From the NCBI GenBank assembly GCA_025603075.1, contig MU626422.1, positions 1 to 43,767 on the forward strand: a stretch of DNA of 43,767 nucleotides, written 5' to 3'. The notes beneath the pieces are model-generated. The model was not told where the DNA came from. It was given only the letters and a program-made list of their open reading frames with translations, and did no database searches. Numbering within the stretch: position 1 is the first letter of the stretch; every line of letters starts with the position of its first letter. This document shows positions 10,008 through 37,014 of the stretch, piece after piece. The translations under genes were made by a program, and so were the position numbers. The DNA comes from Neoconidiobolus thromboides FSU 785 (Eukaryota > Fungi > Entomophthoromycota).

Positions 10008-11810
10008 ATGAAAAATAATGAGAATTCAGGAAGTTATAGAGAATCTTACAGATTTAAAGCTGTCGAAAGGATAGAAAAAATTGAAAGGGAGTTGACGGAT
10101 GTTTTTTCTAGTATAAAGAGCAATTTACTGGCCTATCCAGCTAATGAATTTAGTGGTTTAATAAAGAGTTATCTTAGATGGTCAAAGGAATGTTTGGTTA
10201 CAAAAAAAAGATTGATAGAGTTGAAAAATAAGTCTAACAAATTACACAAAGAAAAATATAAAATTACAGAGGCAAAATTTATAGCTTATTTTGAAAAAGG
10301 GATATCCCATTATACTCAATTGATAAGAAATAGTCAAAAGTTGATGTTCATGAATAGTTGTTTGTGCTGTTGTCCAGAGAGAGAGTTATATGTCACTCCA
10401 AATAAAGTAGATGAGTTAATGCCTTCAGAACTTTTGGTATGTTTTATTAGTATTTATCATCAGCTTTTAGATCCAGATGGATTATGGTTTACAGCTCCAG
10501 TATTGGAACGTATATTTAAAAAAAAAGAACCAAGTTTATTAAAAGCAATGCTTTTACAATCATTATTGAGTTTAGTAGAACTTCCAAAAGAATACAAACA
10601 GCTATTACTTAATAACACTAAAGATATCCAAAGTATGATTATTCAAAGTTATAGTAATCCAAGCTTAGAAAATGTAGTTGCAATCACTTTAATTGCTGGA
10701 GAATATTTATATACTAAAAACTATTCTTTAGCTAACATATATTTAGGACAAGCAGTAAGGATGGCTGGAATGTTACAAATAATACCAAAAGAAACAGAAA
10801 AAGAGAAAAATATTTTTTTAATTACAAACAACCGTAATCAGGATTCATTAAAAGAAAAGCTATGGGAATTTATAATTATCCTCCATGTTGGTTTATCTTA
10901 TTTACCAGGATCTTTTTTAACCTTAAAATATACTAATATAATCCCCTTAATTCATATCAGAAATAAGTTGATTAGTATACCCACAATGCCTAGATTAAAG
11001 ATCAATAAAACAAAAAAGATAGATTTAAAAGCAGTATTAAAAAGTGTTAATATAAAAAATAGTGTTATAGCCCCCAGTATTAACAATAACCAACCTCGCA
11101 AGTCATTATATTGTTCAAGAGCGCTAGCATGCTACTGTCATGTTTTACAATATTATTATAACAAAAAAGATATGCTAAAGAGAAATCCAAACATAGATCC
11201 AATCAACAGGTTCTATTTTGATTTAAATAGTATGTTAAAGATGATTGATGAATTAGATCAAGAGATAAATGATGTACCAACAAATTACAAAAGCTATCAC
11301 CTTTTATCCTTAAAGGAACTTAATGATATAAAATCATACGGTGTACTACAATTAGATAACACTTCATCATTAGGTTCTTCTGGATATTTGATGTTTTTGA
11401 ATAGTAAACTTTATGTTGTTGACCCTATTTCATATATAAGTCCATATCCTCACCCACTATTATACACCTGGCTATGGAAGATTGGATTAGAAACAGCCGA
11501 CAAGTTATGGGATCTATTTTCAAGCTTGTTTAATCGTAATAATGTTAAAAACGAATGTCCATGGATACTATTTAACTCATGTATGAATTTACTTCCAACT
11601 ATCTATTTTTATATTAACGCTTTATCACAGTTATATTTTTCAGAGTCTCAGAATGAATTAATTTATAACAAAGTTCAACAATTAGTTTATTGGATTAAGA
11701 GGGATAGAGACAGAACTCATTATTTTGAAGATAGTGGGTTTGCAATCGAGGTTATAGAAAAAGACTTGCAAAAGTTCCATTTCTTAGAAAAGTATTCTAT
11801 AACAGTATAA
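10008..11810 (+). CDS. Paralog A: fungal TF middle-homology-region-like protein without Zn2Cys6 domain, 600 aa
   Basis: Intronless ORF. AxxYLGQAVRMAxxL and SYSNPSLENVVAITLI resemble PF04082/MHR motifs. Family motifs are shared with five other ORFs in the window. Confidence 0.85.
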   Translation: MKNNENSGSYRESYRFKAVERIEKIERELTDVFSSIKSNLLAYPANEFSGLIKSYLRWSKECLVTKKRLIELKNKSNKLHKEKYKITEAKFIAYFEKGISHYTQLIRNSQKLMFMNSCLCCCPERELYVTPNKVDELMPSELLVCFISIYHQLLDPDGLWFTAPVLERIFKKKEPSLLKAMLLQSLLSLVELPKEYKQLLLNNTKDIQSMIIQSYSNPSLENVVAITLIAGEYLYTKNYSLANIYLGQAVRMAGMLQIIPKETEKEKNIFLITNNRNQDSLKEKLWEFIIILHVGLSYLPGSFLTLKYTNIIPLIHIRNKLISIPTMPRLKINKTKKIDLKAVLKSVNIKNSVIAPSINNNQPRKSLYCSRALACYCHVLQYYYNKKDMLKRNPNIDPINRFYFDLNSMLKMIDELDQEINDVPTNYKSYHLLSLKELNDIKSYGVLQLDNTSSLGSSGYLMFLNSKLYVVDPISYISPYPHPLLYTWLWKIGLETADKLWDLFSSLFNRNNVKNECPWILFNSCMNLLPTIYFYINALSQLYFSESQNELIYNKVQQLVYWIKRDRDRTHYFEDSGFAIEVIEKDLQKFHFLEKYSITV

Positions 11811-12151
11811 TATAATTGATATTAATTGTAATTATTTACCTTTCCCTTTTTAAGAGTATGATCTTATTTATTATTTTTAATACTATTATGGGATGTATTT
11901 ATTTGATAAACTTTGATAAAGAGAAGCCTTGTAAGTGTAAAATTAAAAGAGTTCAAGGGGGAGAGTTGTATAATTATGATAATGGTATTCCACATAAGAG
12001 GTAAATAGGGGAATTGATTGACTAATGGAAGATACTCTATTCTAAAAATATCTAGTTTAAATATATGGATACTATGTTTAGCTTTATATAGCTCGATTCA
12101 GCTATATTAATGAAAAGGGGGTGGTATTTATTAGATAATGACAATAGTAAA

Positions 12152-13903
12152 TTAAAGACTCAAAGGGTACTTATCAGGAAGTTTAAACTGATTTAAATAC
12201 GCCCTAATTCTACTTAAAGTAAAATTAGCATCTAAAAATCCAACATCTGATTTTTCTGATAGTTTAAGAAACTCAATAAACTTTACTAAATAATTATAAA
12301 TTACTATTCTATCCTTTTTATTAAATAAATCATTAATTAATATATTTAATGAAAAATAAATAATTGTTAAAAAATGACTGGAGTTATTAATAATGGGATA
12401 ATGAATTTGGTCATTTTTTATATTTAATTTGATACATGAATTAAGATATTTCCATATATTAATAGTACCTTCGTATAATTTATAACTATGTTTCTTATTA
12501 GATAGCTGATAAGGTTGTTCTAATAATCCAATAAGTGGATTTAATATTGTTAGTTTACTTATCAAAATAACATAATAAGCATAACTACTAAATGAACTAT
12601 CACTAAATTTTAATTTACCATGATATCTTATTTCATAAGCTTGTTCTTGATTAATTAATTGATATTGTTTATATTCTTTTGGTGTATTTTGTAATTTCAT
12701 ATCTATCTGATTAATTAAATTAACTTTATGTTTAGTTAATTTAAATATTGTGTTTGAGTTTTGTATTTCATTTTTTTCATTTCTTATTAATTTAGTTCTA
12801 TAATAGTTGATATAATCGCATGCTTGTAATTCACACCATGTAGCAAACGCATAATAATTAGCTTGTTCGTCATCATTATATGTTGGATTTGTATAGATTG
12901 GATTATTATTATTGTTTAGAAAATCATGAATATTATCTATAATAATTACATTCTGTTTCAATTCTCTTGGCTTAGTAGGTATACATAATACAGTTCTATT
13001 GATGTGCTTTAATCGATAGTTTAATTTATAATCACTTTCAAATTCATTTTTAATTTCTAAAAAGACAGCTAATAATTCTATTATCTCAAATATTCTTTGT
13101 TTCCATAGTTGATTACTTTTACTTAACTTCTCTAAATTTTGTTCTTCTACTTGTTTTTTCATTTCTATTAAATGGAGTATATACAGTCTCGCTGTTGCCC
13201 TTTGTTGTTCAAAAAAATATTCAAAGCTTAATAAAGTTAGTCCAGTTAAATTTTCTAAACTTGGAGTATCCATGCTTTGTCTCAGAATTTGATTAAATCC
13301 ATTCCCTTCCCTTTTTAAAACTTCAATAAACTGCTGATCATTAAATTTAATAATTTTATTAAATGTTTGAAATAGCATTAGCTTTAATAAAGATTTGTTA
13401 CTATTTTTTAATACTCTCAATAAATCTTCTTTCGTCAACCAAAAACTATAAGGGTCCATTAACGTTGTATAAATCTTAATAAGACTTTCTAATAATTCAC
13501 TTGGAAGCATATTATTAATTAAAATAGGAGATGCTTTTAATTCATTCATTATATTTCCTTCATAATAAAATAAACCATAAGGTAATTGATTTTCATTAGT
13601 TAATTGATTAAAGTTAAATATACCATACTCTATTTCTAGACAAAATTCATATTGTTTTTGTTTTATAAGTGAAGAACCTTCTTTCCTTCGTCTCATTTTG
13701 AACATAAATTCCATGACTTCCTTTTGCTTCTTGATTATATAATTCATCCATTTTATATAGTTATTTATTAACTTTACTTTGTTCGGCTCATTATATGAAT
13801 TAATAGTTGCATTATAAAGGATTGTTTGTAGCTCAAAATACAATAAACGGATCCTTTCTGAAGCTTCTGTTTTATATGACCTTTTTTCGAGGGCAAATTC
13901 CAT
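12152..13903 (-). CDS. Paralog B of the same family, 583 aa
   Basis: SYKTEASERI, PSELLESLIKIY, SLLKLMLFQT, PSLENL and TPKEYK motifs. First ATG is 13903 (the track start is TTG 13921). Confidence 0.85.
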   Translation of the reverse strand: MEFALEKRSYKTEASERIRLLYFELQTILYNATINSYNEPNKVKLINNYIKWMNYIIKKQKEVMEFMFKMRRRKEGSSLIKQKQYEFCLEIEYGIFNFNQLTNENQLPYGLFYYEGNIMNELKASPILINNMLPSELLESLIKIYTTLMDPYSFWLTKEDLLRVLKNSNKSLLKLMLFQTFNKIIKFNDQQFIEVLKREGNGFNQILRQSMDTPSLENLTGLTLLSFEYFFEQQRATARLYILHLIEMKKQVEEQNLEKLSKSNQLWKQRIFEIIELLAVFLEIKNEFESDYKLNYRLKHINRTVLCIPTKPRELKQNVIIIDNIHDFLNNNNNPIYTNPTYNDDEQANYYAFATWCELQACDYINYYRTKLIRNEKNEIQNSNTIFKLTKHKVNLINQIDMKLQNTPKEYKQYQLINQEQAYEIRYHGKLKFSDSSFSSYAYYVILISKLTILNPLIGLLEQPYQLSNKKHSYKLYEGTINIWKYLNSCIKLNIKNDQIHYPIINNSSHFLTIIYFSLNILINDLFNKKDRIVIYNYLVKFIEFLKLSEKSDVGFLDANFTLSRIRAYLNQFKLPDKYPLSL

Positions 13904-14356
13904 TTTATTAAAACAAATCAATTGTCTACTAATTTCGATTTTAAATATTATGTGTACAAAAAAGCCAAATCAAATTTTGATTGTTTATCTCATATTAGGT
14001 CATTCATAAAATATCCCTACAGTTTGATGTGGTAAAAAAACTATTAGAAAAATTGCAACAGCAAAAAAATTTACTCAGAAAAATTTTGTTTTTGGAGACA
14101 AAAATTATTTAGTATTGCAACTAATGATCTATCTTTTATGTATACGAAGTTTGGAAGGCTACTACTACTCTTTGTGAAGGGCTTTAATAATTTAAATTTG
14201 TTCCAATTTTAAAATTTATTTATTTCACCAAAATAAATTTAATTTTTTCAACTTTGATGCTAACAACCTAAATAGTTTTCTAGTTTGACATAAAATTTAA
14301 AAAGCAGTCTCATTCCAAAAAACTGTCAACTCACTTTTACAATAAATTTTTAAAAA

Positions 14357-15828
14357 ATGTCCAATTTAATCCGTACTTACTTTAAAGTAATAATCTTATC
14401 TCTTCGCCAATTTTAACATACTGATTTGTTCCCTTGATAGCGTCAATTGCCATCAAGTTTAATACCCTTTTCCTCCACTCAAGGAAAGTTCTTTTTTAAA
14501 AAAGCAATTGAAACTGGGCATGCAGAAATTTATTTCCAATTAGCAAATTATTTTACTACACAATCGGAACCAGCTTGTAAGTTGTTTATTATTATCGCCA
14601 ATATTTTTAGTTTGACTAATATGATTATTGTCCTAGTTTGTGGATTAGGTACGTTATCAATGGTATTAAACTCTCTAGAAGTTGACCCATTGAAAGTTTG
14701 GAAAGGCCCTTGGAGATGGTGAGTTTCAATTATTATCTATCATTTGAACGTAAAAATAACTAAGAAATATCAACTATTAATAGGTATGCTGATGAAATGT
14801 TAGATTGTTGTCGTTCGTTATCTGATATCCGTTTACAAGGTATTACTTTATCCGAATTTGAGTGCCTAGCTAAATGTAATGGATTATCCAGCCGATTATC
14901 TTATAGTAATAAAACAACATTAAATCAATTTGAAAATGATGTTAAACTATCATGTCAATCGGATAATCAAGTGATGGTATTATCTTATTCTAGAAAAACT
15001 TTAGGACAAACAGGTGATGGTCATTTTTCGCCTGTTGGAGGTTATGATCCTGAAGAGAAGATGGTATTAGTATTAGACGTTGCTAGATTTAAATATCCTG
15101 CCTATTGGGTACCTTTGGATTTATTATTTGAATCATTGAAACCAATAGATCCTAGTTCGGGCATCTCAAGAGGTTATACTTTATTATCAAAGAATAGTTT
15201 TACAATAACTTCATTAACTCAATTGGATTTGGATTTAAAAAGTTGGAAACAGTTTTTATTAAAGATAAAAGGAATTAGTAAAAAGGAAGAGCTTTGGCAT
15301 GAATTGATACAATTATATAATGAGTTGAGGGAATTTAAATCGGATAAGAAAGAAATAATTCAACAGAGGATTTTGTTAATGAAAGAAGAGGATGAATTAT
15401 TGCCATTGAAAAAGAACTGTAAAGAAAATAATAATAATAATAATGAATTACAAACAGAATATATAACACAATTTGAATTATTAGTAGCCAGTATTAAAAA
15501 CACAATATTATATAATTGGATACAAAAAAACATCGTCATCCCCTCTTCATTATTACAACAGAATCCCAATTATTTATCCTTATTGACTTTATTTTATTTA
15601 TCTTTACCATATGAAATATTATTTAATAAGGAAGATTTATTATTAATTCAAGACAGAATTAATATTGATAATATTTCATTACAAGAAATTATTGAAATTA
15701 CTTGTAATGATTGTAAATGTAATGATTATAATATTAGATTAGCTAAATCTATATTATCAAATGAAGTAGCAACGTTAAAACAAAAAATGATTAATTTAAA
15801 TAATTGCTTAAATCAAACAACACATTGA
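14357..15828 (+). CDS. PCS1: Phytochelatin synthase, 430 aa; exons 14357-14386, 14441-14576, 14637-14718, 14784-15828
   Basis: Splicing three GT-AG introns (54, 60, 65 nt) gives QSEPAFCGLGTL...WKGPWRWY..MLDCC...GHFSP...LDVARFKY with the Cys-His-Asp triad. Total CDS is 1293 nt, in frame. Confidence 0.95.
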
Positions 15829-15886
15829 GTTAATATTAGACATAATAAAAGTTAAACACAATTTATGAATAATTTATTTGCTTTAA

Positions 15887-17647
15887 TTATATATATATTT
15901 GATTAAATAATTGTTCCACCCCATATAGCTTAATTAATAATTTAAATTGCTGATAAACATAATTTGTATCTTTAAATCCAAACTTCGAATTATAACAACC
16001 ATTTAAGTAAGAATATATAAAATTCAAGTTTGAAATGAACTCACTTTTAATTTCTTTAGAAACGTTTTCTTGTTTAATAATAATAAAATAATATTTAAAT
16101 AATGGTAAAAAATCTCTTAAATTATTCATCAACAAATAGTAAATCTCTTTTTTTTCAAAAGGAGTATTAATTATTGTGGATAATAATTCATATAAATTAC
16201 TTGTTATTTGATAACTTAATTGTAAATATCGTCCTGGAATTGTATCTAATTTACTTTGATTACTACAGTTATTAAATAATAATGGTTGTACTAAATATAA
16301 ACAATTTAAATTCAATATTAAATAAGCATATGTACCAAAAGACGTATTATCACTATTACTGATTATATTATGTTTACCATAAATTAATAAACTATTTGTC
16401 TGTTCTTTTGTTATTAATGTATATATTTTATAATTTGATGGGGTTAATGTTAATTGATTCAATATTAGTTTTATATAATTATCGATTTGTTGAGTGTTAT
16501 AATTACAGTTTAATTTCAATTGTAATACTTCTAAATCAATCCAAGTAGCAAATAAGTAATATTTTTTTTGAAATTCATCTTCATTCGGTTTTTTGTCATT
16601 ATTATCTAAATTTAATATTAAATGTAGTCCCTCTGTTTTAATAATAGTAGCATCTTCTATTTTACATTTTCTAACTTTAGTCGGTAAGCATAATAGTTTG
16701 TTATTAATATGTTGAAATTTAATGAACTCATCTTTCTTATTTACTTCTTTCCATTTTTCCTTATTCTCTACTTGTTTGCCTATAATTAGTAAACAAATAA
16801 AATCAACTAACTCGAATATGTTCTTCTGCCATTCCGCCATCATTTTATCGTGTATTTTATTGTTTTGAATTTTTAATTTCTCTTTCATTTTCATGATTTC
16901 TAACAAATAAATATTTGCACTCTTTATCTCTGCTGAAAAATAAAACTCCCAACATAATAAAGTAATCCCAGTTAAACTCATTAAATCTCCCTTTTCTAAA
17001 GCTTCCACTACTAGGTTATTGAAATGCCATTCAGATATATTAATTAATTTTTCCAATTGATCACAATCAAATTGAATTAACTTATTAAATGTTTGTAACA
17101 ACATCATTTTAACTAATGTATTTTGTTGACATTTTAATATCTTGATTAACATTTCTTTTGTCAACCAAAAACTCTCCGTATCCAGCTTATTGCTATATAA
17201 ATTTATAAAACATTCTATTAATTGACTTGGTTTTAAACCATTAAAAGTATTAACACTTAAATTAAAATCTCTCATCAGATCCATAGGTAATAAAGCAATC
17301 AATGAATGTTCGGAAGGATGTTGAATATCATTATTTACGAATTCCATAAAATTTTTAATACCTAACTCTGTTTCTAATCCAAATAGGCGAACTTCTTTAT
17401 TATAGATTACCAACCCATTACGTCGACGTTGTATCTTTTTTTTTATCTTTATCAAATTAAGATACTTATTTAAAATATAATTAAGCCATCGAAGGTAATT
17501 AGTTATTGTAATAAGATGTGGATTATTCCTGTTACCACTGGTACTATTATTCATACTAATTATTTCCATACTGCTCTTCAATATCCTTTCAATTTCTACT
17601 ATCCTCTTAACTGCAGCATCTTTGTAACTTTGGGGTTTTAACGGCAT
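15887..17647 (-). CDS. Paralog C of the same family, 586 aa
   Basis: SYKDAAVKRI, KPSQLIECFINLY, WLTKEML, HINNKLLCLPT, TPSNYKIY and SFGTYAYL motifs; closest to paralog B. Confidence 0.85.
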   Translation of the reverse strand: MPLKPQSYKDAAVKRIVEIERILKSSMEIISMNNSTSGNRNNPHLITITNYLRWLNYILNKYLNLIKIKKKIQRRRNGLVIYNKEVRLFGLETELGIKNFMEFVNNDIQHPSEHSLIALLPMDLMRDFNLSVNTFNGLKPSQLIECFINLYSNKLDTESFWLTKEMLIKILKCQQNTLVKMMLLQTFNKLIQFDCDQLEKLINISEWHFNNLVVEALEKGDLMSLTGITLLCWEFYFSAEIKSANIYLLEIMKMKEKLKIQNNKIHDKMMAEWQKNIFELVDFICLLIIGKQVENKEKWKEVNKKDEFIKFQHINNKLLCLPTKVRKCKIEDATIIKTEGLHLILNLDNNDKKPNEDEFQKKYYLFATWIDLEVLQLKLNCNYNTQQIDNYIKLILNQLTLTPSNYKIYTLITKEQTNSLLIYGKHNIISNSDNTSFGTYAYLILNLNCLYLVQPLLFNNCSNQSKLDTIPGRYLQLSYQITSNLYELLSTIINTPFEKKEIYYLLMNNLRDFLPLFKYYFIIIKQENVSKEIKSEFISNLNFIYSYLNGCYNSKFGFKDTNYVYQQFKLLIKLYGVEQLFNQIYI

Positions 17648-18828
17648 CTTTAACTAATAATTCTAATTATCAAATTCTTGTTTTATTATATTTTTTATTA
17701 CTTTCTTTCTTATATATTATTATTCATTTTTATGCTTCTATTATTATTTTCATTGCCAATAAAAAAAGACAAGGATACAATTAATTTTTTTAAGAGTTTG
17801 AAATTTTCGGGGAGTTAGAAACTATTCCATATTTAGTAATTAGTTTTATATAGAAATTGATTGCGAACCCTCAAGGAGTTTAGATGTTAGTGATGTTTAA
17901 AAAATTGTTAAAAAAAAGAGAAGAGAATTAAATTTTCTTGATTGTATGGGAAAAAATTGGGAATTGATGAATAGAAGATAAAAAGATAATATAACACTGT
18001 AAATCACTTTGATTTTTTTTAAAGTTATACTGATTAAAGTCGACTTACTTTTAAAGCTCTCCGTTTCCACCTTCTTCCGATTTATTTCCCGCAATTAACA
18101 ATTAACTTCACTTTGGATTTTCCGCATGCTAACAATTCAATTTATCTTTATGTGCCACTAATAGACCTTAGTCTTAACTTCGGTTTAATTTTCCTTGGGA
18201 CTAAAGAATTTAATAGTTTTAATAGTTTAAAATTGTTATATTATTACTACTTTTAAAAACTCAATAAATGATATTACTCTTTATAGTAAGCTAAATTTTA
18301 TCGTATGTTTTATTTAATTTTATTGGGGTGTTTATAAGCGTTGGGGATTAGTTAATTATAATATATAATAAAATTAATACATAAATGTACCAATTATATT
18401 AGTAAAAAGCAACTTTTGAATTTACTTTATATAGTAGTTTAACTAACATCATAACATCCTTGGCATTATTAGGATTTATAAGCATTATGATTAAAGAATA
18501 TATAATTTGTAAAAGTATAACAATATTAACATTTTGGTTTTAGAGTTTTGAGTTTATCTCATAGAAATCTATACAATATTTACTATCTCTGGTATTACTG
18601 GGGTTTGTAAGCTTTCGAAATCAAATAATATATTATATATATAAGTAAAACAATATTGACTTTTTAATTGATAAATTTTTGAGTTTACCATATTTATACA
18701 TTAGTCTAGATTATATCGTATTATTATTTACTACACTAAAAATTAGTTAACTTTGAAAAGTAATCAATGATAAATTCAAAAGTAATTTAACTTTTTAATT
18801 AAAAGAAAATTGGTAAATTTTATAAAAA

Positions 18829-20577
18829 TTATAAAACTGAAAGATGAATAGATCTTAATTCCGTTTTTAATACCTAATAATAAATAACATTAGCGCTCAG
18901 CAACATATAAAACAATAACTAAATATAAACTTACTTCAACAGCTTGTTCAAATTCCAATCGATTTTTGGCTTCTAAAATCCAATCTTCAGCTAATTTCTT
19001 TGGCCATCCCTTTAATTGATTTAATTCTCTAGCTGCTAAATCCAAATCATTTTGATTTAAATAATATTGACATCTTGCAATTACAGCCTCAACATCATTA
19101 CCTTCCACAAGGCCTTGTTTATTAAACAAAAAAGTAGTTAAAATATATGAGCTTAAATGTCCAAAAAACCCTGCGTTTTCTTTAACTAAGGCAGAGGAGG
19201 AAACTTCTTCACTAACTTTTTCAAAACGTTGTTTTAAGGAATTGAAGTTTAATAGACCTCTCATAGCTACTAACTCATCCAAGGAATTGATTACTTCAGC
19301 AACTAAAGGTGTACATTGAGAAATGGATTGAATATATCTTAATTCTTCAATAAATGGAGAATTATTTTTCTCTTTAATGGCAGTTTCTAAAGCATCAATA
19401 GCACAACTCAATTTTTGATAATTGATTTGATTGGAGGCGTTTTGTTTACTATTAATAAATCCATCTTCTAATAACATAACTTGTTGAATGACCTGATCTA
19501 ATTTACTTAATCTTCCATTCCTTTCGGAATCAACTAACAATTTACTTTCTCTACGCCAAAAACGTTCGAGTGTTTTGCCTTGTTCTTGGAGTTTTTCATC
19601 AAGCTGAGCTTTAAACCTATCCATTAATTTTTCTCTTTCACTTTCATAAAGTTGATATTTATCTTTCATTTCCAACTCATATTTTTCTTCCAATTCTTTC
19701 TTTTGTTGAGTTAACATATCTTCAACAATTACATTACTTCTTTCTAAATCTTTATTCAAAGTACTACGATTTTTAATACTTTCATCTAAATAAGGGGTTA
19801 AATTTTTTAATGAATATAATACTTTAGAATAAGCTAAGACGCTTTCTTCGACTGTTACTTTTTTGTCTCCATTAGTTGAAATATAGTTATCAATGGATTC
19901 TACTAACTCTTTCATTACTTGATCCTCATAAGTTAATTTGGTTAATTGACTTGCAAGTTGTTGTAATTGACGTAAACTTTTTTCATCCATAGTAGGTTTA
20001 GAATGCTTAATCTCAGGTAACTTTTCTTTAACTAATACTTTGACTTGAGGTTCTTTATCTTTAGTTACTGGTACGTTACTAATAGCGTGAGTTGGAGTAG
20101 CAACAGTGTCACTATTATTCATTAACCCATTAACACTAGATTTAACTGATTCAACAATTTTATTAACATTTTCACTAACTGTTTTTAAAGGTTGAAAATC
20201 ATCACTTTTTACTTTATCTTCCAATTGTTTCATTAAAGTTAAACTCTCTTGACCATATGGAGCATATTCCAAGTATTGTTTTTGAAACTCTTGATTATGA
20301 TTAGCATAATAAACAGTACCACCATAGCCTGCAGATACTAAAGTGATGAAACCTAATGATTTTAAAAACATAGATCCATTTTTTTTTTCTAAGTTTAAGC
20401 CATGGGTGGCTGATTGGGTTTCGAAACGCTATATAAAGATAATAATTGAAAAAGAAAATGGTTAGTTTGATTAGTTAAGGTAAGTTAAAAGAACAAACTT
20501 ACCTTTTGTACTTTAATTGAGTTAAGATTAAACGATGGGCGGTAACCTTTATTAAGTTTGGTTACTGTTTTATACAT
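18829..20577 (-). CDS. MIC60: MICOS subunit Mic60 (mitofilin), 537 aa; exons 20577-20503, 20428-18935, 18873-18829
   Basis: Basic, acid-free presequence (MYKTVTKLNKGYRPSFNLNSIKVQKRF), one TM segment, a long coiled coil and a mitofilin C-terminus (DLDLAARELNQLKGWPKKLAEDWI). Two GTAAGT...TAG introns join in frame. Confidence 0.93.
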
Positions 20578-20844
20578 CTTTTATGGTATGATATATGTTG
20601 GATGACTTAAAATTTTAAACTTTGAATTGTTTTTAGCTATTAGCATTCTTTAGTAATTGATTATGAAAATGGATTACTTAGGTTATTATGGGAAATTTGA
20701 AATTTAACTAACTACTAATCATTTTATTCCAATAGTAAAAAATTAAAAGCTAAAAAAATAATACATAAGATATAATGACTAATTTTAATAATAAATAATA
20801 ATAAAATGAACGGCTTGACAAACCTCTCAACCAGTTCTTTACTT

Positions 20845-22632
20845 TTAAAAAGTAAACCGATACTTGTAAGCTATTTTAAATGATTTAAGGCGCTTATTCA
20901 AATGATCACAAGCAATTTTACTATCATCAAACCTGGCCAATTGTACACTGTCCTTTTCCAACCATAAAATGCATAACTGGATTTTGTTTACTATATCAGT
21001 ACTCACTTTCTCGTCAAAAGCATATTGCTCCAGGGCATTCAAATAAAACGTAATTACCGGTAGTAAATCCCTAGCGTTACTTGCTATTACCCACGGATAT
21101 TCATTCTCGCATATCTCTCTATCAAATAAAGTGTAAAACAATTCCCATAAATCATTTGCTGCTTCTAGTCCAACTGGCCATAACCAATCATAAGGCAAAA
21201 CATGAGGACATGAACTAATAAAAGAGATGGGGTCTACTATAAAGAGTTTACTAATTAATAACATTAGATATCCAAAAGAGCCTAAAGATCCGGAATTATC
21301 GGATTGTAAACGACCATAAGAATGAAGTTCTGTAATTTGCGAAAAAGACAGAAAGCGGTAACTTTTATAATTTTGTGGAGTGGTTTGTATTTCACTGTCT
21401 AATTCCTGAATCATGTTAATAATATTAGTGATGTCAAAATAAAACCTATTGATTGGATATATGTTGGAACTATTTTTTAAAATAGATCTACCATTGATAT
21501 AGGATTGTGAAAGTTCTAGGTAGTTAGATAATGCTTTAGAGTGATAATAAACATCTTCATAGATAATGGGAGTTTTAAAATTAAAATTATGAGTATCAAC
21601 TCCTTTTAACAAATTACCTGGTTCTATTTTAGTAATTTTATCTTTTGCTAACCTAGCAATTGTTGGCAGACATAATGTTTTATTCTTGATATGAGTCAAA
21701 GGCAAGATTTTGATGTTTTTAAACATTAAAGGACACTCTGTGACATTATACAAAGATATTTGTAAAAGTAGCAAAATTTCCCATAATGTTTGTTTCCAAT
21801 AAGTTTCTGTAAAGTCACACTTAAATGAAGATGTTTGTTCTATCTTATCTATTGGTATAACCCCTAATAACTCTGACATACGTACAGCTTGTCCTAGATA
21901 CAATCTAGCTGTCCCAAAATCTCCTTTGAATAAATATTCTCCAGTGATCAAAGCCAATGCAGCTACATTTTGTAGGCTTGGGTTAGCATAACTTTGAATG
22001 ATTTTACTTTCGATACCACTATTGAAGTTAAGTAAAACTGACTTCAATTCTTGTGGTAGTTCAATCAGTTGACACATGGATTGTACTAACATGGCCTTTA
22101 GCAAAGTGCTTTCTTTTTGTCTAAAGATGGAATTGATTTGATCTGCTGAAAACCAGAGAGCGTCTGAGTCTAGGTATTGGCAATAAATGGCGGTGAAGCA
22201 ATCAAACAATTTTAAAGGATTAATACCATTTATTTGGTTTGGTATTATCTTTAATTCAACTTCAGGGCTGTAATCGGTTTGGAAGTACAATTTCATTTGA
22301 ATCAAAGTTAGCTGTTTAGTATAATATTCGAATCCTTTTGTAAAATATGATTGAAACTGAAAATGTTTACTTTGGATGTTATTTTTTTCTAACTGCGTTC
22401 CTCTGGGCTTGTGTTTTATATGGGTCAATTCTCTTTGCATATCAATGCATCGGTTCGCCCATTGTAAATACTTTTGGATTGATATACCTAGGTCAGATGC
22501 TACTCCAGTTAGCCCTTCTATTTTTAAGCTTTTTAAGATCCTATTGAATTCGGTTTCAATGCTTTTAATTCTACTTATTGCTTTATTTCGATACGATTCT
22601 TTGTTCCATTTACAGCTACCTCCTTTCTCCAT
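20845..22632 (-). CDS. Paralog D of the same family, 595 aa
   Basis: ESYRNKAISRI, SYANPSLQNVAALALI, ARLYLGQAVRM, YGRLQSDNSGSLGSFGYL and VGLEAANDLWELF motifs. Confidence 0.85.
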   Translation of the reverse strand: MEKGGSCKWNKESYRNKAISRIKSIETEFNRILKSLKIEGLTGVASDLGISIQKYLQWANRCIDMQRELTHIKHKPRGTQLEKNNIQSKHFQFQSYFTKGFEYYTKQLTLIQMKLYFQTDYSPEVELKIIPNQINGINPLKLFDCFTAIYCQYLDSDALWFSADQINSIFRQKESTLLKAMLVQSMCQLIELPQELKSVLLNFNSGIESKIIQSYANPSLQNVAALALITGEYLFKGDFGTARLYLGQAVRMSELLGVIPIDKIEQTSSFKCDFTETYWKQTLWEILLLLQISLYNVTECPLMFKNIKILPLTHIKNKTLCLPTIARLAKDKITKIEPGNLLKGVDTHNFNFKTPIIYEDVYYHSKALSNYLELSQSYINGRSILKNSSNIYPINRFYFDITNIINMIQELDSEIQTTPQNYKSYRFLSFSQITELHSYGRLQSDNSGSLGSFGYLMLLISKLFIVDPISFISSCPHVLPYDWLWPVGLEAANDLWELFYTLFDREICENEYPWVIASNARDLLPVITFYLNALEQYAFDEKVSTDIVNKIQLCILWLEKDSVQLARFDDSKIACDHLNKRLKSFKIAYKYRFTF

Positions 22633-23341
22633 TTGGAATTAGCTTATATTTAAGTATACGTTAGCTATAAAACTGTAAAAGTTCAATTTTAATTAATTTT
22701 GGGTACGATACAAAAAGTATTTAAAAACTAGTATAATTTATTAATTATTTTGAATAAAAAACAAAAGTACAATAAACTCTTTTAAACTTTTAAGATTTAA
22801 CTTTGCATAATGCATTTCTAAAATTAAATTAAAATATTTAAGCAAACGAAAGCCGGAAAATAGATTAGGATTATTTAATAAAATTAGTGAAAGTGGCAGT
22901 AAACTTTATTTGAAATAAGAATTAAAGCAGTGATGAGTAGAATAAAATATGCTATAGTTGGAATTTCATGAAACATATCGATCATTCACAACTACAGTAT
23001 ATTGAAAAGTATAACAAATCAACAATCAATACCTTTCAATTTGTATTAAGTTTAATATTGAGGCTTTTTTTTAGCAAACTACTAATAATTGCCTCAGTAT
23101 ACACATTAGATATAATAGATAGAATAAATAGTAAAGAAGTAGCAAGTTGATGCTCGATTTACTCACCTGTGTCAGGCTCAAGAGTAAAGCAGACTACATT
23201 TAAAAGCTTCAAAGTTTAGAAATAAATGTAAAAAACATAAAAAAGTATTAGTTGTATTATCGAAGTATCTGATGATGGTATTCTACACATAATTGCATTG
23301 ATATGAATTGATCTTATATTTATTAATCTGACTTACCTTTG

Positions 23342-24494: not shown

Positions 24495-24881
24495 CTAAGT
24501 GTACTCACAAAAGACATTGCCTTGAACCTGTCGTTGACAACGAGTTCCTGACTCACATAGACAAAGGACATAATTTTCTTGAGCGTAAGTGTAAAACTCC
24601 CTAATACAATTATCACAAGACATAACTCTTTCACGACAGCCTCCACCATAGTTCCTCAAACTATTCCGCTAATTCTTTAGTGGATTCTTTAACACTTTGA
24701 TTCTTGAATTCTTTGTTACACACCTCGTCCAATTAGGCTTTGCCCTCCCATCCTTGTACTTAACAGAGCTATAGTTGGATATAAATTTAACTTTATACTG
24801 ACTATGGTATTTCACAATGGATCTACGAAGCCCAAGGGTAGGAACAACGGTAATAAGTAAAAGAATAAGAGTAAACTTCAT
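24495..24881 (-). CDS. Small secreted cysteine-rich protein (8 Cys) interrupted by an in-frame TAG at 24671-24669 (51-nt intron, readthrough or pseudogene)
   Basis: Signal peptide MKFTLILLLITVVPTLG. The frame continues past the TAG for 57 codons with 7 Cys, to a TAG at 24497-24495. Confidence 0.7.
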
Positions 24882-25146: not shown

Positions 25147-25148
25147 AT

Positions 25149-26047: not shown

Positions 26048-26145
26048 AGGGATGTATTTTTGTGTTTAAGGATTTTGCTAACAATTTTTCCGCTCAAATA
26101 GGGCTTAGAAAATGGAAAAAGTAATGAAAACAAAAAAACATCCTC
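26048..26145 (+). mobile_element. MITE copy 10, with an empty-site paralog at 23-26
   Basis: TSD ATAT on both sides; the homologous sequence at 1-60 has a single ATAT and no insert. Confidence 0.95.
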
Positions 26146-26548: not shown

Positions 26549-26644
26549 GGAGATGTATTTTTGTGTTTAAGAATTTGCTAACAAATTTTCCGCTTAAATA
26601 GCGCTTAAAAAAATGAAAATAATGAAGTCAAAAAAAACACTCCT
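26549..26644 (+). mobile_element. MITE copy 11
   Basis: GGAGATGTATTTTTGTG...CACTCCT; flanks ATAT/GTAT (one mismatch). Confidence 0.9.
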
Positions 26645-27036
26645 GTATAATTGTGATAGAGACTATGTTACTTTTTTAATCTCATGTTTTATTGAATAAA
26701 GAGCAAAAAAGTGTTACAAAAAGTTTATAAAATTGTTTCAATAGTCTGTTGCAAATTATTTATCTTATTGCTGAAAATCAATTAAATAAAGTTTGAATTT
26801 GATATAATATAGAATATAACAGATGATAATAGAGCTAAACAACTATAAATATTTTTATAACGTTATAATCAGTGATACCAAGTATTCTTTATATACCATT
26901 CGTAAATATTAATTGATAGTATGTTTAAAATTCTGGATAGATTTCATTTATTTTGAATTAATAATTAAAACTTTTAAATATCTTTAATTTTTATTTTTAT
27001 TTTTATTAATAGAAAAAATTTTATAGCGCACTTAAA

Positions 27037-30427: not shown

Positions 30428-32221
30428 TTATATAACTATAGAATATTTTTCCAAAAAATGAAACTTTTCTAAGTCTTTTTCTATAACCTCGATTGCATAT
30501 CCACTATCTTCAAAGTAATGAGTTTCATCCCTATCTTTTTTGATCCAATAAACTAATTGTTGAACTTTGCTATAAATTATTTCATTTTGTCCTTCTACAA
30601 AGTGCAACTGTGATAAGGCATTAAGGTAAAAATAAACAGTTGGAAGTAAATCAAAGGAAGTATTAAATACAATCCAAGGACATTCATCATCAATGTTGTT
30701 ACGATTAAATAAAGTAGAAAACAAATCCCATAATTTATCTGCCGTTTCTAATCCAATTGTCCATAGCCAGGAATATAATAGTGAATGAGAACATGGACTT
30801 ATATAAGAAAGAGGATCAATAATATAAAGTTTAGTATTTAAAAACATAAAATAACCAGAAGAGCCTAATGATGAAGTATCATCTGATTGTAGTACACCGT
30901 ATGATTTAATGTTGGCAAGCTGCTTTGAGGATAAAAATCGAAAACTTTTATAGTTTATTGATACATTGTTTATATCTTTATCTAATTCACCAATCATTTT
31001 TAATATACTATTGACATCAAAATAAAACCTATCAATCGGATATATATTTGGATTCTTTTTTAACATATTTCTTTCATTAAGATATGATTGTAAAACGTGA
31101 AAATAACAAGCTATTGCTCTTGAATAATAAGATAACTCAAAAGACTTAGTATTATTAATATTAGGGACCATAGTACTTGTATTGATACTTTTTAACATAT
31201 CTTTCAAATCTATCTTTTTGATTTTATTGATACCCAATCTAGGCATAGTAGGTAAACTAATTGTTTTATCTCTAACATGGCTCAAAGGAGTTACTCTGCT
31301 ATATTTTAGAATTAAAGGGTATCCAGGTAAGTACGATAGACTAATATAAAAAATCACAATAAGTTCCCATAACTTATCTTTTAATGAATCTTCAAACTTG
31401 TTTTTTGTGAATGAATCCGTATTTTCTCTTTCTTCCGGTAATATTTGTAACATTTGTCCCATCCTTATTGCCTGTCCTAAATATATACTGGCTAGTGAAT
31501 AATTATTTGTATACAAATATTCTCCAGAAATTAAAATAATTGCAATCACATCATCTAATGTTGGATCATTATAGCTTTGAGCCATCATATTTTGAATGTT
31601 TTTAGTGCTATTAAGCAATATTTGTTCATACTCCTTTGGAAGTTCAATCAAACTCAATATTGATTGCATAAGAATAGATTTTAATAAACTTGGTTCTTTT
31701 TTTCTAAATATATTTTCCAATACTGGAGCTGTAAGCCACAGCTCATCTGGGTCCAAATATTGATAATAAATATTAATAAAGCATACCAAAAGCTCCGAAG
31801 GCATTAACCCGTCTATTTTATTTGGAGTGATATATAACTCTCTTTCTGGAGAAGAACATATGCAATTGCTCATAAGCATCATCTTTTGACTATTTTTTAT
31901 TGCCTTTGTATAGTACGATATACCATTTTCAAAATAAGTTATAAATTTTAATTCTGCATTTCGACATTTCTTTTTCTGTAGCTGACTTTGGTTTGGTCGA
32001 TCCATCAATTCCTTTAAACTTTTTTTCCTATCCAAACACTCCTTTGTCCATTTTAGATAGCTTTTTATTAAACCACTAAACTCATTAGTCGGATAGGCCA
32101 GTATGCTACTCTTTATACTAGAAAAAAAATTTGTTAGCTCCTTTTCAATTTCATTGATTCTTTTAATAGCTTTAAATTTATATGACTCTTTATAAATTTT
32201 TAGTTCTTCATTTTGGCCCAT
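30428..32221 (-). CDS. Paralog E of the same family, 597 aa (closest to A)
   Basis: Roughly two-thirds identical to paralog A by eye. First ATG is 32221. A GCTAAC branch point and an AG acceptor lie just upstream, so a short upstream exon is possible. Confidence 0.85.
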   Translation of the reverse strand: MGQNEELKIYKESYKFKAIKRINEIEKELTNFFSSIKSSILAYPTNEFSGLIKSYLKWTKECLDRKKSLKELMDRPNQSQLQKKKCRNAELKFITYFENGISYYTKAIKNSQKMMLMSNCICSSPERELYITPNKIDGLMPSELLVCFINIYYQYLDPDELWLTAPVLENIFRKKEPSLLKSILMQSILSLIELPKEYEQILLNSTKNIQNMMAQSYNDPTLDDVIAIILISGEYLYTNNYSLASIYLGQAIRMGQMLQILPEERENTDSFTKNKFEDSLKDKLWELIVIFYISLSYLPGYPLILKYSRVTPLSHVRDKTISLPTMPRLGINKIKKIDLKDMLKSINTSTMVPNINNTKSFELSYYSRAIACYFHVLQSYLNERNMLKKNPNIYPIDRFYFDVNSILKMIGELDKDINNVSINYKSFRFLSSKQLANIKSYGVLQSDDTSSLGSSGYFMFLNTKLYIIDPLSYISPCSHSLLYSWLWTIGLETADKLWDLFSTLFNRNNIDDECPWIVFNTSFDLLPTVYFYLNALSQLHFVEGQNEIIYSKVQQLVYWIKKDRDETHYFEDSGYAIEVIEKDLEKFHFLEKYSIVI

Positions 32222-33440
32222 CGAATACAAATCTTTATATGATATTGAAGGTGTTAGCTTGTGTGATTAATAAATTTAAGTTCAAGAACATAATTGACCA
32301 AACCATAAATCGATCTATTTTTTGAGCTCTTGCAAAATTTGTAAATTAGCATAAATACTCCAAACCTATCTTTTTTTCAACATTTGCATTATAAAAAGTT
32401 CTAAATTTTGTAGTTCATGATAAACAAGATATATCATAAAAACATTCATATACGAATTTTGTAGATTTAAATCTAAATCAAACTGCAAAATTATTTATGT
32501 TTATATTTATATCTATAAGCTTTTAAATCTACTCATTTATGCACTATCATTGAAAGCGTAAGGATCTTAGACAAAGTTGTAGATACCTTTGAAATAAACA
32601 TACACAATTGTTTTTTAGTACTACTCCATCTTTTAACCATTAGATATCCAAATATAAACTTTACACTAGATTAATCTGTCATGAAATTCCAATTAAAGTT
32701 TTTAGTTTAAAGCTTAGAAGCCTTGTTTCTATGACCTATAAGGTACATATAGATAATTTAATGTTATATGAGTGTTTAAATATGTCTTAATTTATAGTAT
32801 CCTCACTTCAAGAAAAAACCTTTTGATTCATAATAGCTACACTAAAGTTACTACCTTTTGGCTATAAAACTAATTTTATGACCAATGTAAAATAAATAGT
32901 AGTAATTTAGTATACTACATTTCCAAAGAAAGTAACATTATATGGGGTTTTCTCTATTTTTATAAAGCAACAGCTACAAGTAGAACAGGACTATAGTATA
33001 TAAAGAAAAAGAACGATTATTATAATTATTATATTATTTACAAATTGTACGGGAATGAAACACTTGAGGTGCAATTTGAACAGTAAAAGTTATATATATC
33101 ATTCTATAGTTAAATAAAGTCAAAAACTGTCAACAAAAAACTATTAATAGAACGCTATATAAAAGAAGAAAATTTATGTTAAGAGAAATTTAAACTTAAA
33201 CCAGTAATAATTAAATTCAAGTTGCTATTAGTTAAAATCGTAGTTGTCATAGATTATTTACACTTAAATGCTTGTAACTATTCTTTGAGCCACTCTAGTT
33301 TTAATTTAATGCTTGTCATTTTAAAAACTATTAGTTTAATATAAATATTTATTAACTTGTAATATGTCTTTTAAATCAGCTACATTCTTATAAGTATCTA
33401 CTGCTTTTAGAAAGTGAATTAACTTTTGTTAAGAGATACT

Positions 33441-34700: not shown

Positions 34701-35244
34701 AGTTTTGAATGATTAGCCTAAATTACCGTTTTTCTTAAACATTCCTTTATCTCATTTCTAGCTATAGACCTGATAAATTCAACTTTATAGATAAAATAGC
34801 TATAAAATTAGCACTCGTGTTCCTGGTTTTTATTCAAAAAAGCAGTTTTATTTATTATCGTTCATAATATCATTATGAATATTGATAGATGTCAGTCCTT
34901 AAAAGTAATCATCTAATAGCCTTAAATTTAAATTGGTAACTTATTTGAAATTGATAAAAATGGGCAATTTAGATCTCTATTTCGACCCGCTGAGAAGAAG
35001 AGTTATAAAAAGAAACATTAGAGCTCTTTACATTCCAAATTATACAGTTCATTCATTAAAAGCTAGTGACTGCCATGTGATAGTTCTTATTTGATAAACT
35101 GTAAGGTTTGGAATTTTAAGGGTTATAAAAAAATAAATTATTAAATTATTAATTACAATTATGTAACACATCGATAAAATTCAACAAATATAAAACTGCT
35201 ATTTTATAAATTTTAGTTAATTTTTTTATACAACTGATTGCTTT

Positions 35245-37014
35245 ATGACTCACTTAACAGCCAAAACTTTAAAAGATAATAAAACTTACTTAACAAAGGC
35301 CCATGAGAGAATAACCTCATTAGAGAATGAGTTGTTAACTTGTCTGTCGAAATTAAATGATAATGGCAACGATAAACAAGCGAAACCCAATAAAGCTCTA
35401 CTATTAGAATATATCCGATGGAGTCTAGTTTGTATATCCAGAAACAATAAATTAGAAGAATTGAAGAGAGAAGTTAGACGAAGAGCGAATAAAGAAGTGT
35501 ATTATAAAGAAGTGAATCATTTTAATATGGAAATTAACAGTGGGTTAAATTATTATAGTTCACTATTAAATCCAAACACAACTGACACATTAAACTGGCT
35601 ACATACTAACTATATTTCAAATCCCAGTTTAGATTTATATATTTCTCCAATCAAAGTAGATGGAAAGAAACCATCCGAGTTAATAAGAAGTTTCGTAGAT
35701 ATTTATAGTTTTCATTTAGATAAAAATGGACTCTGGTTTTCTCAAGATGAAATAGAAGGAATACTAAAGGATAAAGGAGAAAGTTTGTTAAAACAAATGT
35801 TATTAGAATCTATTAGTAGCTTAATGAATTCTGAACTAAAATTTCATTTCAAGATAAGAAATATTGAACAAAGACTTATTGAATGTTATAGTAACCCAAA
35901 TATTTCAAATTTATTTGCTATTACTTTAATTGTTGGTGAATTAATCTTCAAAAATGATTTCAAAAAAGCAGCTTACTACCTTTCAAATGCTACTAAGATG
36001 GCTTATATACTAGGGATTAATGATGTTACAAATAGTTTAATAGTTGATATTAATAATGGTATCTTTAAATATTCAAATTCTTATAAGAAACTTTGGGAGT
36101 TATTATTATTATTTCAATTAATTTTATTAGGTGAAGAAGGAGTAGGATTACCTATTATAAAAGAAGTAAAAGTATCTTCATTTAATCATGTAAACAATAA
36201 AGCTATTTGTTTACCAACTATGTCGAGACATTCTCAAAATAATATATCTTATAATATTCAAAAATTCAATTCTATGATGAATTATAAGGATAAAAGTAAT
36301 GATACAGAGATGATTTATTATTCTAAATGTATAACATTTCATTTACAATTATTACAGTCTCAAATTAACAATGAACATTTAATAAATAATGTCAAAACAA
36401 TCAATTCAATTGAAGAGTTTTATTTTAAGAAAGATGAGTTAATTAAGTTATTAATAGCAATTGAGACCGCTTTAAAAAATACTCCTTCTAGTTATAAAGT
36501 TTATAATCTATTAACTAAAAATCAAATCAACGAAATTTCCAATTTTGGTTTACCTCAACCCGATACAAAACCCACTTTTGGTTCTTGTGGTTATTTACTA
36601 TTATTAAATGGTAAATTATATCTAGCTGATCCTATATCTCATCTCAATCCGTTCAAACATGATTTGCTAGAAGATTGGCTTTGGGAAATAGGATTACAAG
36701 CAGCGGATGATATATATAACTTATTTTCAACTTTATTTAACAAAAAAAGGAAGGAAGGCTATGTTTATCACTTAATAAATAGTGCCCTTGATTGTATCCC
36801 TACATGTGCATTTTATTTTAATTCATTAGCAAATAAGGCATTTGATCCCAACATTCTTGAGCAAGTTTATTTGAAACTTAAAGAAATGTTAAATTGGTTT
36901 AAAGAGGATAGTGAGAAACATCATATATTTAATAATTCATTAATGTTTATAAATATAATGTCTCAGTTTACCAAAAAATTTAATTTATCACCAAATTATT
37001 CGTTTGATTTATAA
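35245..37014 (+). CDS. Paralog F of the same family, 589 aa
   Basis: TYLTKAHERI, KPSELIRSFVDIY, CYSNPNISNLFAITLI, AAYYLSNATKMAYILG and IGLQAADDIYNLFS motifs. Confidence 0.85.
   Translation: MTHLTAKTLKDNKTYLTKAHERITSLENELLTCLSKLNDNGNDKQAKPNKALLLEYIRWSLVCISRNNKLEELKREVRRRANKEVYYKEVNHFNMEINSGLNYYSSLLNPNTTDTLNWLHTNYISNPSLDLYISPIKVDGKKPSELIRSFVDIYSFHLDKNGLWFSQDEIEGILKDKGESLLKQMLLESISSLMNSELKFHFKIRNIEQRLIECYSNPNISNLFAITLIVGELIFKNDFKKAAYYLSNATKMAYILGINDVTNSLIVDINNGIFKYSNSYKKLWELLLLFQLILLGEEGVGLPIIKEVKVSSFNHVNNKAICLPTMSRHSQNNISYNIQKFNSMMNYKDKSNDTEMIYYSKCITFHLQLLQSQINNEHLINNVKTINSIEEFYFKKDELIKLLIAIETALKNTPSSYKVYNLLTKNQINEISNFGLPQPDTKPTFGSCGYLLLLNGKLYLADPISHLNPFKHDLLEDWLWEIGLQAADDIYNLFSTLFNKKRKEGYVYHLINSALDCIPTCAFYFNSLANKAFDPNILEQVYLKLKEMLNWFKEDSEKHHIFNNSLMFINIMSQFTKKFNLSPNYSFDL

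Follow-up and report, generated by a model that had tools for sequence, protein, structure and literature searches.

Zinc-cluster-less paralogs of probable CeGAL descent in a loosened gene cluster of the fungus Neoconidiobolus thromboides

The scaffold of Neoconidiobolus thromboides FSU 785 studied here, which in its entirety (43.7 kb) is referred to as the window, carries within 27 kb six intact paralogous open reading frames (ORFs) of 583-600 aa with pairwise identities of 21-68%. At least two of them, paralogs C and D, are truly without a zinc head, and we consider it probable that the six are functional Entomophthorales genes derived from Gal4/Cep3-type (CeGAL) zinc-cluster regulators, which would have lost the Zn2Cys6 head, spread by old local duplications and now serve as DNA-binding-less regulatory subunits. 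The ORFs are as follows:

10008..11810, + strand: paralog A, 600 aa, intact ORF
12152..13903, - strand: paralog B, 583 aa counted from its first ATG (listed as an ORF from a TTG at 13921)
15887..17647, - strand: paralog C, 586 aa
20845..22632, - strand: paralog D, 595 aa
30428..32221, - strand: paralog E, 597 aa counted from its first ATG (listed as an ORF from a TTG at 32230)
35245..37014, + strand: paralog F, 589 aa

A first-pass annotation of the window had called six paralogs at these coordinates; all are present and align end to end. An in-frame stop lies 2-16 codons upstream of each listed ORF start (6/6), and the GenBank models of B and E use the first ATGs (13903 and 32221), not TTG. 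The GenBank model for paralog A is a 129-aa piece only (10548-10936), and all family members are labeled "hypothetical protein." In end-to-end alignments paralog A is identical to E at 68%, D at 41%, F at 32%, B at 25%, and C at 22% of positions, which bears out the earlier estimate of roughly two-thirds identity for A/E and far less for B/C. The kinship of the six ORFs is far beyond chance because their family-profile scores reach E-values of 1e-203 to 1e-267. The copies had also been described as dispersed among housekeeping genes. Other genes do lie between them, encoding phytochelatin synthase, MIC60/mitofilin, and an Aa_trans amino-acid transporter, but "dispersed" holds only in relative terms: of the eight full-length clade-I genes in the genome, six lie within this single 27-kb stretch, and the locus is therefore a loosened gene cluster. 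It probably originated by old local duplications that join (A,E), then D, then F, with a separate B/C lineage, and would have been rearranged afterwards.

The family census yielded at least 17 full-length genes in N. thromboides, to which Entomophthora muscae and a third organism added one each; none of them has a zinc cluster, and out of 1.84 billion representatives no protein with a zinc cluster was similar to the family at E<=0.001. On database evidence, the family appears to be restricted to Entomophthorales. Word-indexed searches retrieved nothing but the query, whether this was D, an 18-sequence alignment, or the E. muscae homolog; these blanks are meaningless because the candidate list fills up with AT-rich low-complexity words. 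At the sequence level, purifying selection on the family is evident: dN/dS was 0.19 for A/E and 0.25 for A/D (values outside the A/E/D group are uninformative because dS is saturated), and C and D differ from sister-strain contigs by seven synonymous and two non-synonymous changes. With all frames intact, this agrees with the long-term selection proposed in the first-pass annotation.

The same annotation had related the body of these proteins to the middle homology domain (MHD) of Gal4-type factors, a kinship that is upheld by several kinds of evidence. No clear match came out of Foldseek when the model of A covered the whole protein (pLDDT 69), and a domain-only model of D, built from a deeper alignment, was needed instead:

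20848..22251, - strand: MHD-like all-helical domain of D (residues 128-595), model pLDDT 82.6, pTM 0.85

In the ESM Atlas, the language-model features of D and C, which are only 21% identical, each scored 0.97 against Zn(2)-C6/Fungal_trans clusters, and the ten best named matches all belonged to one family. The Atlas structure matches of both proteins (TM 0.57-0.59 over 421-445 residues) were to clusters of PF04082, "Regulatory protein GAL4" among them. Cep3, a CBF3 kinetochore subunit (2veq, 2quq, 6p7v, 6f07, 6gyp), was the top-ranked solved structure for both models and came first among PDB matches in four structure searches: Foldseek gave 2veq a probability of 0.97 (E 0.038, TM 0.34), two VIA-wide PDB searches gave Cep3 Z scores of 10.5 and 9.8 over 340 and 326 residues, and re-alignment of the Foldseek top matches gave 6p7v_A (Cep3) a Z score of 9.9 over 312 residues. 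The match is a distant one because identity is 7-13% and the rmsd 9-13 A. The predicted models thus have the Cep3/Gal4-like all-alpha fold of an MHD, though the absolute scores are modest.

Unlike the window proteins, Cep3 retains its zinc cluster and binds centromere DNA, but it is a precedent for a CeGAL protein turned to another use, namely at the kinetochore. A comparable move of the window family out of transcription, for example to a scaffold or adaptor role, seems unlikely to us. It would suit a strongly diverged family, expanded in one lineage, that has no DNA-binding domain (DBD), no detectable kinship to DBD-bearing factors, and no acidic activation region (the acidic C-terminal tail is absent, pI 7.5-9.1). 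However, nothing positive was found for another process, the neighboring genes are mutually unrelated, the proteins keep a linker and heptad helix of the kind seen in DNA-bound dimers, and a basic cluster in B, C, and F is a candidate nuclear import signal.

Decidedly improbable is the idea that the proteins form an unrelated, lineage-specific helical-repeat family, which came to resemble the MHD by all-alpha convergence. A direct motif match to PF04082, as claimed earlier, was not reproduced: the Pfam HMMs found neither PF04082 nor PF11951 at E<1 in the six proteins, sequence methods (Pfam and PDB sequence searches) gave no significant PF04082 link for them, and PDB searches with family profiles returned chance matches only (SAMHD1, RPT4, ORF8). 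Moreover, a Z score of about 10 is within reach of unrelated helical proteins; 14-3-3 proteins tied with Cep3 in the re-alignment of the Foldseek top matches (Z ~9.9) and other helical-repeat proteins (Z about 9-9.6) tied with Cep3 (Z 9.8) in the VIA-wide search. The 14-3-3 proteins, however, cover less than half the domain, and Cep3 is the only PDB match that spans all of its ~460 residues. PF04082 was also seen below threshold in 3 of 18 family members (19.3, 15.3, and 12.9 bits, where 23 is the cut-off; best E 6.3e-4) and is the sole Pfam family matched by more than one member; these matches recur in a homologous segment, in which a "Y.G.A.RMA..LG"-type motif is found. The N-terminus, in turn, resembles the linker and coiled coil that follow the cluster in Gal4-type factors. 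The language-model features, the Atlas matches over more than 420 residues, Cep3, and the sub-threshold PF04082 matches are independent lines that agree with each other, and all point to a Gal4/Cep3-type MHD.

The N-terminal segment lies at the following positions, given as the equivalents of D residues 13-36:

10044-10115, + strand: linker and heptad helix of A
13808-13879, - strand: linker and heptad helix of B
17558-17629, - strand: linker and heptad helix of C
22525..22596, - strand: linker and heptad helix of D (residues 13-36)
32114-32185, - strand: linker and heptad helix of E
35284-35355, + strand: linker and heptad helix of F

A helix of the form (S/T)Y..A..RI..(I/L)E.E(L/F) starts at residue 7-14 in every copy (6/6), and the earlier description of a conserved helix within about 15 aa of the start is accurate. 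Hydrophobic columns at D residues 18, 22, 25, 29, 33, and 36 are kept in all 15 full-length members, with a 4-3-4-4-3 spacing after a near-invariant Ser (Ser13 in D numbering, 14/15), as expected of a heptad helix at the position of the post-cluster coiled coil. Judging from these residues, the basic linker and short heptad helix of CeGAL type appear to be present, and a role in dimerization is putative. That the basic residues ahead of the helix bind DNA directly, in the manner of a bZIP protein, is very improbable: a basic stretch does precede the heptad repeat, especially in clade II (K/R-x-R-S...), but it measures only ~6-10 residues in the window copies, and neither a bZIP signature nor a Pfam bZIP match was found. 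In Gal4-type factors, the linker after the cluster contributes spacing rather than base recognition.

Caution is called for with any claim of a headless regulator: a large survey judged nearly all fungal "MHD-only" regulators to be gene-model errors, and it put down more than 85% of the "MHD-only" proteins in databases to overlooked DBD exons, in most cases within 1 kb upstream (PMC10141177). The DNA was scanned for the PF00172-type binuclear cluster (CX2CX6CX5-16CX2CX6-9C), and no such motif was present in the six frames of the whole window or in the 1.5 kb upstream of each of the six genes. Nor did a cluster emerge when the window and six related loci were scanned with relaxed criteria (half-motifs and Cys density), and Cys-rich upstream ORF pieces had no match to Zn_clus at E<=10. 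The motif is likewise absent from the six window proteins and from 17 of 17 full-length relatives. The first-pass annotation was thus right that neither the ORFs nor their upstream DNA hold a Cys cluster. Candidate zinc exons at 9680-9760 (upstream of A) and 32910-32990 (upstream of E) were rejected for wrong Cys spacing and no Pfam match. A Cys-rich piece at 24504-24638, on the same strand and 1.9 kb upstream of D, also has the wrong spacing, and the D transcript stops at 22728 without a joint to it.

For C and D, transcript ends were taken from assembled contigs (run X1), whose RNA nature is indicated by intergenic bins at zero depth and by a GT..AG joint of 74 nt within MIC60, which recurs in runs X2 and X4. 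The mRNA 5' ends lie 99 nt (C) and 96 nt (D) upstream of the ATG, and D is covered by one unspliced RNA contig over 20952-22728:

17648..17746, - strand: C mRNA 5' leader; RNA contig terminated by Illumina adapter at 17746, every frame with stops
17654..17701, - strand: probable 48-nt GT..AG intron in the C leader, skipped in one sister-strain RNA contig
22633..22728, - strand: D mRNA 5' leader; contig terminated by adapter at 22728, every frame with stops, no upstream joint

The exon upstream of the 48-nt intron is non-coding, and the optional splicing adds no coding sequence. When full-length RNA contigs were sought by exact matches to the proteins B, C, E, and F, the genome scaffold alone was returned. 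With every frame of both leaders closed by stops and no coding sequence joined from an upstream exon, C and D are truly headless. The first-pass annotation, which had read the paralogs as lacking a DBD, had itself warned of a missed 5' exon; for C and D the transcript ends answer this caveat, and neither carries a spliced Zn2Cys6 exon. It is hardly credible that the paralogs are ordinary Zn2Cys6 factors whose zinc exon was lost to an annotation or assembly artefact (far upstream, split by an intron, or on another scaffold): transcript 5' ends cover two of the six paralogs and several relatives have mis-called starts (P0012, P0016, and the 482-aa gene in L004), but the C and D contigs end ~100 nt upstream of the ATG without a joint, the 43.7-kb window and six other loci show neither a full nor a half cluster motif close to a member, and the mis-called starts conceal a helix exon alone, not a cluster.

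Among known systems, CeGAL proteins (PF00172 + PF04082/PF11951; cd12148) are the best match of the window proteins in features and fold, as both have the linker, the short heptad helix, and a large all-helical regulatory domain. The window proteins differ in having neither Zn2Cys6 cluster nor acidic activation tail, in being too diverged for the Pfam models, and in being known only from Entomophthorales. In co-activators of the TamA/Dal81 type, which are Gal4-type proteins, the zinc cluster is dispensable and the regulatory body can work through protein-protein contacts; they still encode the cluster and are related to the window proteins at the family level only. Id proteins (HLH without the basic region) embody the same concept, a dimerization module minus its DNA-contacting part, but belong to a wholly different fold and kingdom and serve as an analogy only, for a possible decoy function. 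The best functional analogy is FarD of Aspergillus niger (NRRL3_09145), an MHD-only Far-like protein in which the zinc cluster is absent from all orthologs and which is genetically required for a regulated response alongside the zinc-cluster factor FarA (PMC10512302). As with FarD, the transcripts of C and D encode no DBD. FarD differs from the window family in being single-copy, 817 aa long, confined to Eurotiales, and recognizable as PF04082, and neither an N-terminal coiled coil nor a family expansion is reported for it.

We therefore return to descent from a CeGAL regulator that lost its Zn2Cys6 DNA-binding head. In a canonical factor, the cluster is directly followed by a basic linker and a short heptad coiled coil; the proteins would start at this segment and continue with a helical hairpin and the ~460-aa all-helical middle-homology-like domain. 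Dimerization may proceed via the retained N-terminal helix, the MHD, or both, most likely with paralogs of the family and possibly with DBD-bearing factors, and the dimers may act on transcription indirectly, whether as co-regulators, as decoys, or as partners that sense signals. Pairing with canonical factors is weakly disfavored, and pairing among paralogs favored, because none of the 1.84 billion representatives is a zinc-cluster protein detectably similar to the family; a canonical partner is a conjecture because no zinc-cluster protein resembles the family's helix. More tentatively, the ~20 members might be a family in which the MHD works alone, in combinatorial homo- and heterodimers for the sensing of signals or the titration of other regulators.

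Whether an MHD can act without a DNA-binding domain was left open by the CeGAL survey (PMC10141177). If the latter reading is true, the family would be a natural and expanded proof of the MHD as an autonomous functional module. A headless state checked by transcripts is rare, as this protein type is usually an annotation error, and Pfam-based transcription-factor censuses miss the whole family. N. thromboides and its relatives would thereby offer, in a lineage that diverged early and is associated with insects, a testable natural set of CeGAL proteins without a DBD.

Neoconidiobolus thromboides FSU 785 is an entomophthoralean fungus, whose contig MU626422.1 (GCA_025603075.1; GC ~25%) is covered end to end by the window (43,767 bp). 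The six paralogous ORFs reported in the first-pass annotation were placed identically by our ORF listing, and this observation is confirmed:

10008-11810, + strand, paralog A
12152-13921, - strand, paralog B, listed from a TTG start; the first ATG (13903) gives the 583 aa of the GenBank model
15887-17647, - strand, paralog C
20845-22632, - strand, paralog D
30428-32230, - strand, paralog E, listed from a TTG start; the first ATG (32221) gives the 597 aa of the GenBank model
35245-37014, + strand, paralog F

Identity to A in an end-to-end alignment of the six was 68% for E, 41% for D, 32% for F, 25% for B, and 22% for C, and tblastn of the window found no additional family fragments beyond these ORFs. 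The copies are separated by genes for phytochelatin synthase, MIC60/mitofilin, and an Aa_trans transporter, and the region is flanked by one kinase gene and two Kelch-propeller genes. The two Kelch beta-propeller proteins (38780-40132 and 41411-42565), distant paralogs of one another, each have a predicted signal-like N-terminus and a C-terminal membrane anchor. The phytochelatin synthase ORF (343 aa) reaches 15828; its GenBank model, at 14441-15189, has only 208 aa and leaves out a long C-terminal stretch. The GenBank product for A is only 129 aa (P0011, 10548-10936), taken from the middle of the intact 600-aa ORF, and the full-length A protein is not in protein collections.

Proteins with a middle homology domain (MHD) only were described as exceptional in the study of CeGAL (Gal4/Cep3-type Zn2Cys6) regulators, >85-90% of such entries being annotation errors whose DNA-binding domain (DBD) typically lies <1 kb upstream (PMC10141177). 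We found no canonical Zn2Cys6 pattern, even with relaxed spacers, in the six frames of the entire window, including the 1.5 kb upstream of each of A-F, in agreement with the earlier statement that neither the ORFs nor their upstream DNA encode a zinc cluster. In-frame stops lie 2-16 codons ahead of every listed ORF start. Looser half-motif and cysteine-density scans of the window and six related loci revealed nothing near any member, and two Cys-containing upstream ORF pieces had no Pfam match even at E<=10.

A spliced Zn2Cys6 exon, which would argue against headless proteins, was not found for C and D at the 5' ends of RNA contigs. Eight sequencing runs contain window 17300-23300, and the contigs of four of them were aligned to that stretch. 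Contigs of run X1 carry the reference letters throughout; because their depth is zero over the intergenic bins 17903-18907 and they skip the 74-nt GT..AG intron of MIC60/mitofilin (20429-20502), we took X1 as RNA. Skipping of this intron in RNA contigs of three runs (X1, X2, and X4) was our positive control for splicing. The X1 contig of C extends to 17746, where Illumina adapter sequence takes over, while that of D spans 20952-22728 without gap or joint and also terminates in adapter, indicating that the mRNAs start 99 nt (C) and 96 nt (D) before the ATG; a sister-strain contig over D stops at 22731. Both leaders have stop codons in all three frames. A 48-nt segment in the leader of C (17654-17701, GT..AG on the gene strand) is skipped in one sister-strain contig but retained in the reference-strain contig, and is probably an optional intron, with its 3' end 6 nt ahead of the ATG. 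The 45-nt upstream exon does not encode protein, and in-frame stops persist after skipping. Because no Zn2Cys6 exon is joined in their transcripts, C and D are truly headless. Upstream of D, RNA contigs also cover 22888-23300 at a depth of 3-7 (vs 224 for D); they are not joined to D, and no ORF of >=100 aa is found there.

The first-pass annotation had assigned the body of these proteins to the MHD (PF04082) from motifs. This motif-level identification was not reproducible by HMMs, since Pfam gave nothing at E<0.09 on the six proteins, PF04082 included, and family profiles had no real match among PDB sequences; the kinship itself was supported by other evidence. In the ESM Atlas, D and C, although only 21% identical to each other, obtained the same feature score of 0.97 to clusters labelled Zn(2)-C6 or Fungal_trans (186 and 173 shared features, respectively), the ten best named matches all being one family. 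The Atlas' own models of D and C gave TM 0.57-0.59 over 421-445 residues to PF04082 clusters, with a "Regulatory protein GAL4" cluster as the top structure match for C; a full-length predicted model made here also found Zn(2)-C6 clusters first, at a TM of only ~0.4. Cep3 is the single solved protein named for this domain type (PMC10141177). In an exhaustive VIA search of 48,161 chains with a model of A (pLDDT 69), Cep3 of K. lactis and of S. cerevisiae ranked first and second (Z 10.5 and 9.1; 340 and 337 residues aligned), and a domain-only model of D, built from an 18-sequence alignment (pLDDT 82.6, pTM 0.85), again placed Cep3 first (Z 9.8, 326 residues). The best Foldseek match of the D domain model was Cep3p (2veq; E 0.038, prob 0.97), with nine further Cep3 chains in the top 40, but on re-alignment of the top matches 14-3-3 proteins tie at Z ~9.8, covering less than half of the domain, and the rmsd to Cep3 is 9-13 A. 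PF04082 was also the only Pfam family matched by more than one of 18 family members: the best of its three matches had E 6.3e-4 (19.3 bits vs a cut-off of 23), and all three fall in the segment bearing the "Y.G.A.RMA..LG" motif. As these four lines (Atlas features, Atlas structures, solved structures, and Pfam on relatives) agree with the MHD identification, we consider it very likely that the family is homologous to the CeGAL regulatory domain.

An exhaustive HMMER search of 1.84 billion representatives with a six-sequence profile yielded only 20 proteins at E<=0.001, none of them with a zinc-cluster motif. These comprised the products of the window itself; the B/C-like P0009 and P0010, encoded on other scaffolds; two fragments (P0013 and P0017); a single Entomophthora muscae protein (P0012); and ten more distant proteins (P0014-P0023), nine from N. 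thromboides and one (P0014) on a Logan contig from run ERR10900026. NCBI names the relatives encoded on other scaffolds of GCA_025603075.1 as hypothetical proteins. The tree shows two well-supported clades: clade I contains (F,(D,(A,E))) and a group of C, P0010, and (B,P0009), with the E. muscae protein as sister, and clade II is P0014-P0023. The window thus contains six of the eight clade-I genes of full length. More tandem A/E-like copies than these eight must exist, since the end of one clade-I copy (3-167) and the start of another (1464-1850, P0013) lie on a 1.85-kb unplaced scaffold (L006). Clade-II genes are clustered too, three in tandem on scaffold MU626265.1 (L004, 3767-9399); in the first two, the N-terminal helix is encoded by a small first exon, and the third, degenerate and broken across frames, is probably a pseudogene. 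The annotated starts of P0012, P0016, and the 482-aa L004 gene miss the helix exon, and the missed part is never a cluster. The start annotated for P0012 is probably too far downstream: at its locus (L005, 5559-5810), a piece of ORF further upstream opens with Met and encodes the conserved linker and helix, and no zinc-cluster motif was found within 5.5 kb upstream. The ERR10900026 contig carries P0014 (L011, 179-2079), including the exon for the helix and a short intron left unspliced; the contig has a GC of 32% and shows no similarity at the DNA level to N. thromboides loci, indicating that a third organism has the family.

The N-terminal heptad helix claimed earlier is recognizable in the sequences of all 15 full-length members, as a near-invariant Ser followed by conserved hydrophobic positions (D residues 18, 22, 25, 29, 33, and 36; ~three heptads), with basic residues ahead of the Ser, clearest in clade II. 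The sequence of the E. muscae element is close to that of the linker and coiled coil after the Gal4 cluster. The helix was of low confidence in the AF2 monomer (pLDDT 30-49), as would be expected of one requiring a partner, and a helical hairpin (residues 46-116) was better modeled. The proteins are basic (pI 7.5-9.1) and have no acidic C-terminal tail; an RRR(K/R)-type cluster near residue 70-80 of B, C, and F could be a nuclear import signal.

Long-term selection on the copies, as proposed earlier, is supported by dN/dS of 0.19 for A/E (at dS 0.94) and 0.25 for A/D and D/E, dS being saturated in deeper pairs. None of the six ORFs is broken, and transcription of C and D is seen in two studies. 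Relative to sister-strain RNA contigs, D has five synonymous differences plus one conservative replacement (M186I), whereas C has two synonymous differences and a single non-synonymous one.

A dimerisation-type helix and a regulatory domain are kept, with neither a DNA-binding head nor an activation tail. On the simplest reading, these proteins would be DNA-binding-less regulatory subunits working via protein-protein contacts. Independent action of the MHD was explicitly left open by the CeGAL study (PMC10141177). One genetic precedent for an MHD-only regulator is FarD of Aspergillus niger, which lacks the cluster in all orthologs and is needed for ferulic acid induction, as is the zinc-cluster factor FarA (PMC10512302). 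Decoy pairing with canonical factors seems less likely than dimers among the paralogs, since no DBD-bearing protein detectably similar to the family was found by HMMER (1.84 billion representatives, E<=0.001). We hold this functional part tentatively, at somewhat less than an even chance, while the evolutionary and structural part is highly probable, and the structural interpretation is strengthened by the transcripts of C and D. The family is best read as an expanded and strongly diverged form of a known kind, the Gal4-type regulators and the rare proteins that are genuinely MHD-only.
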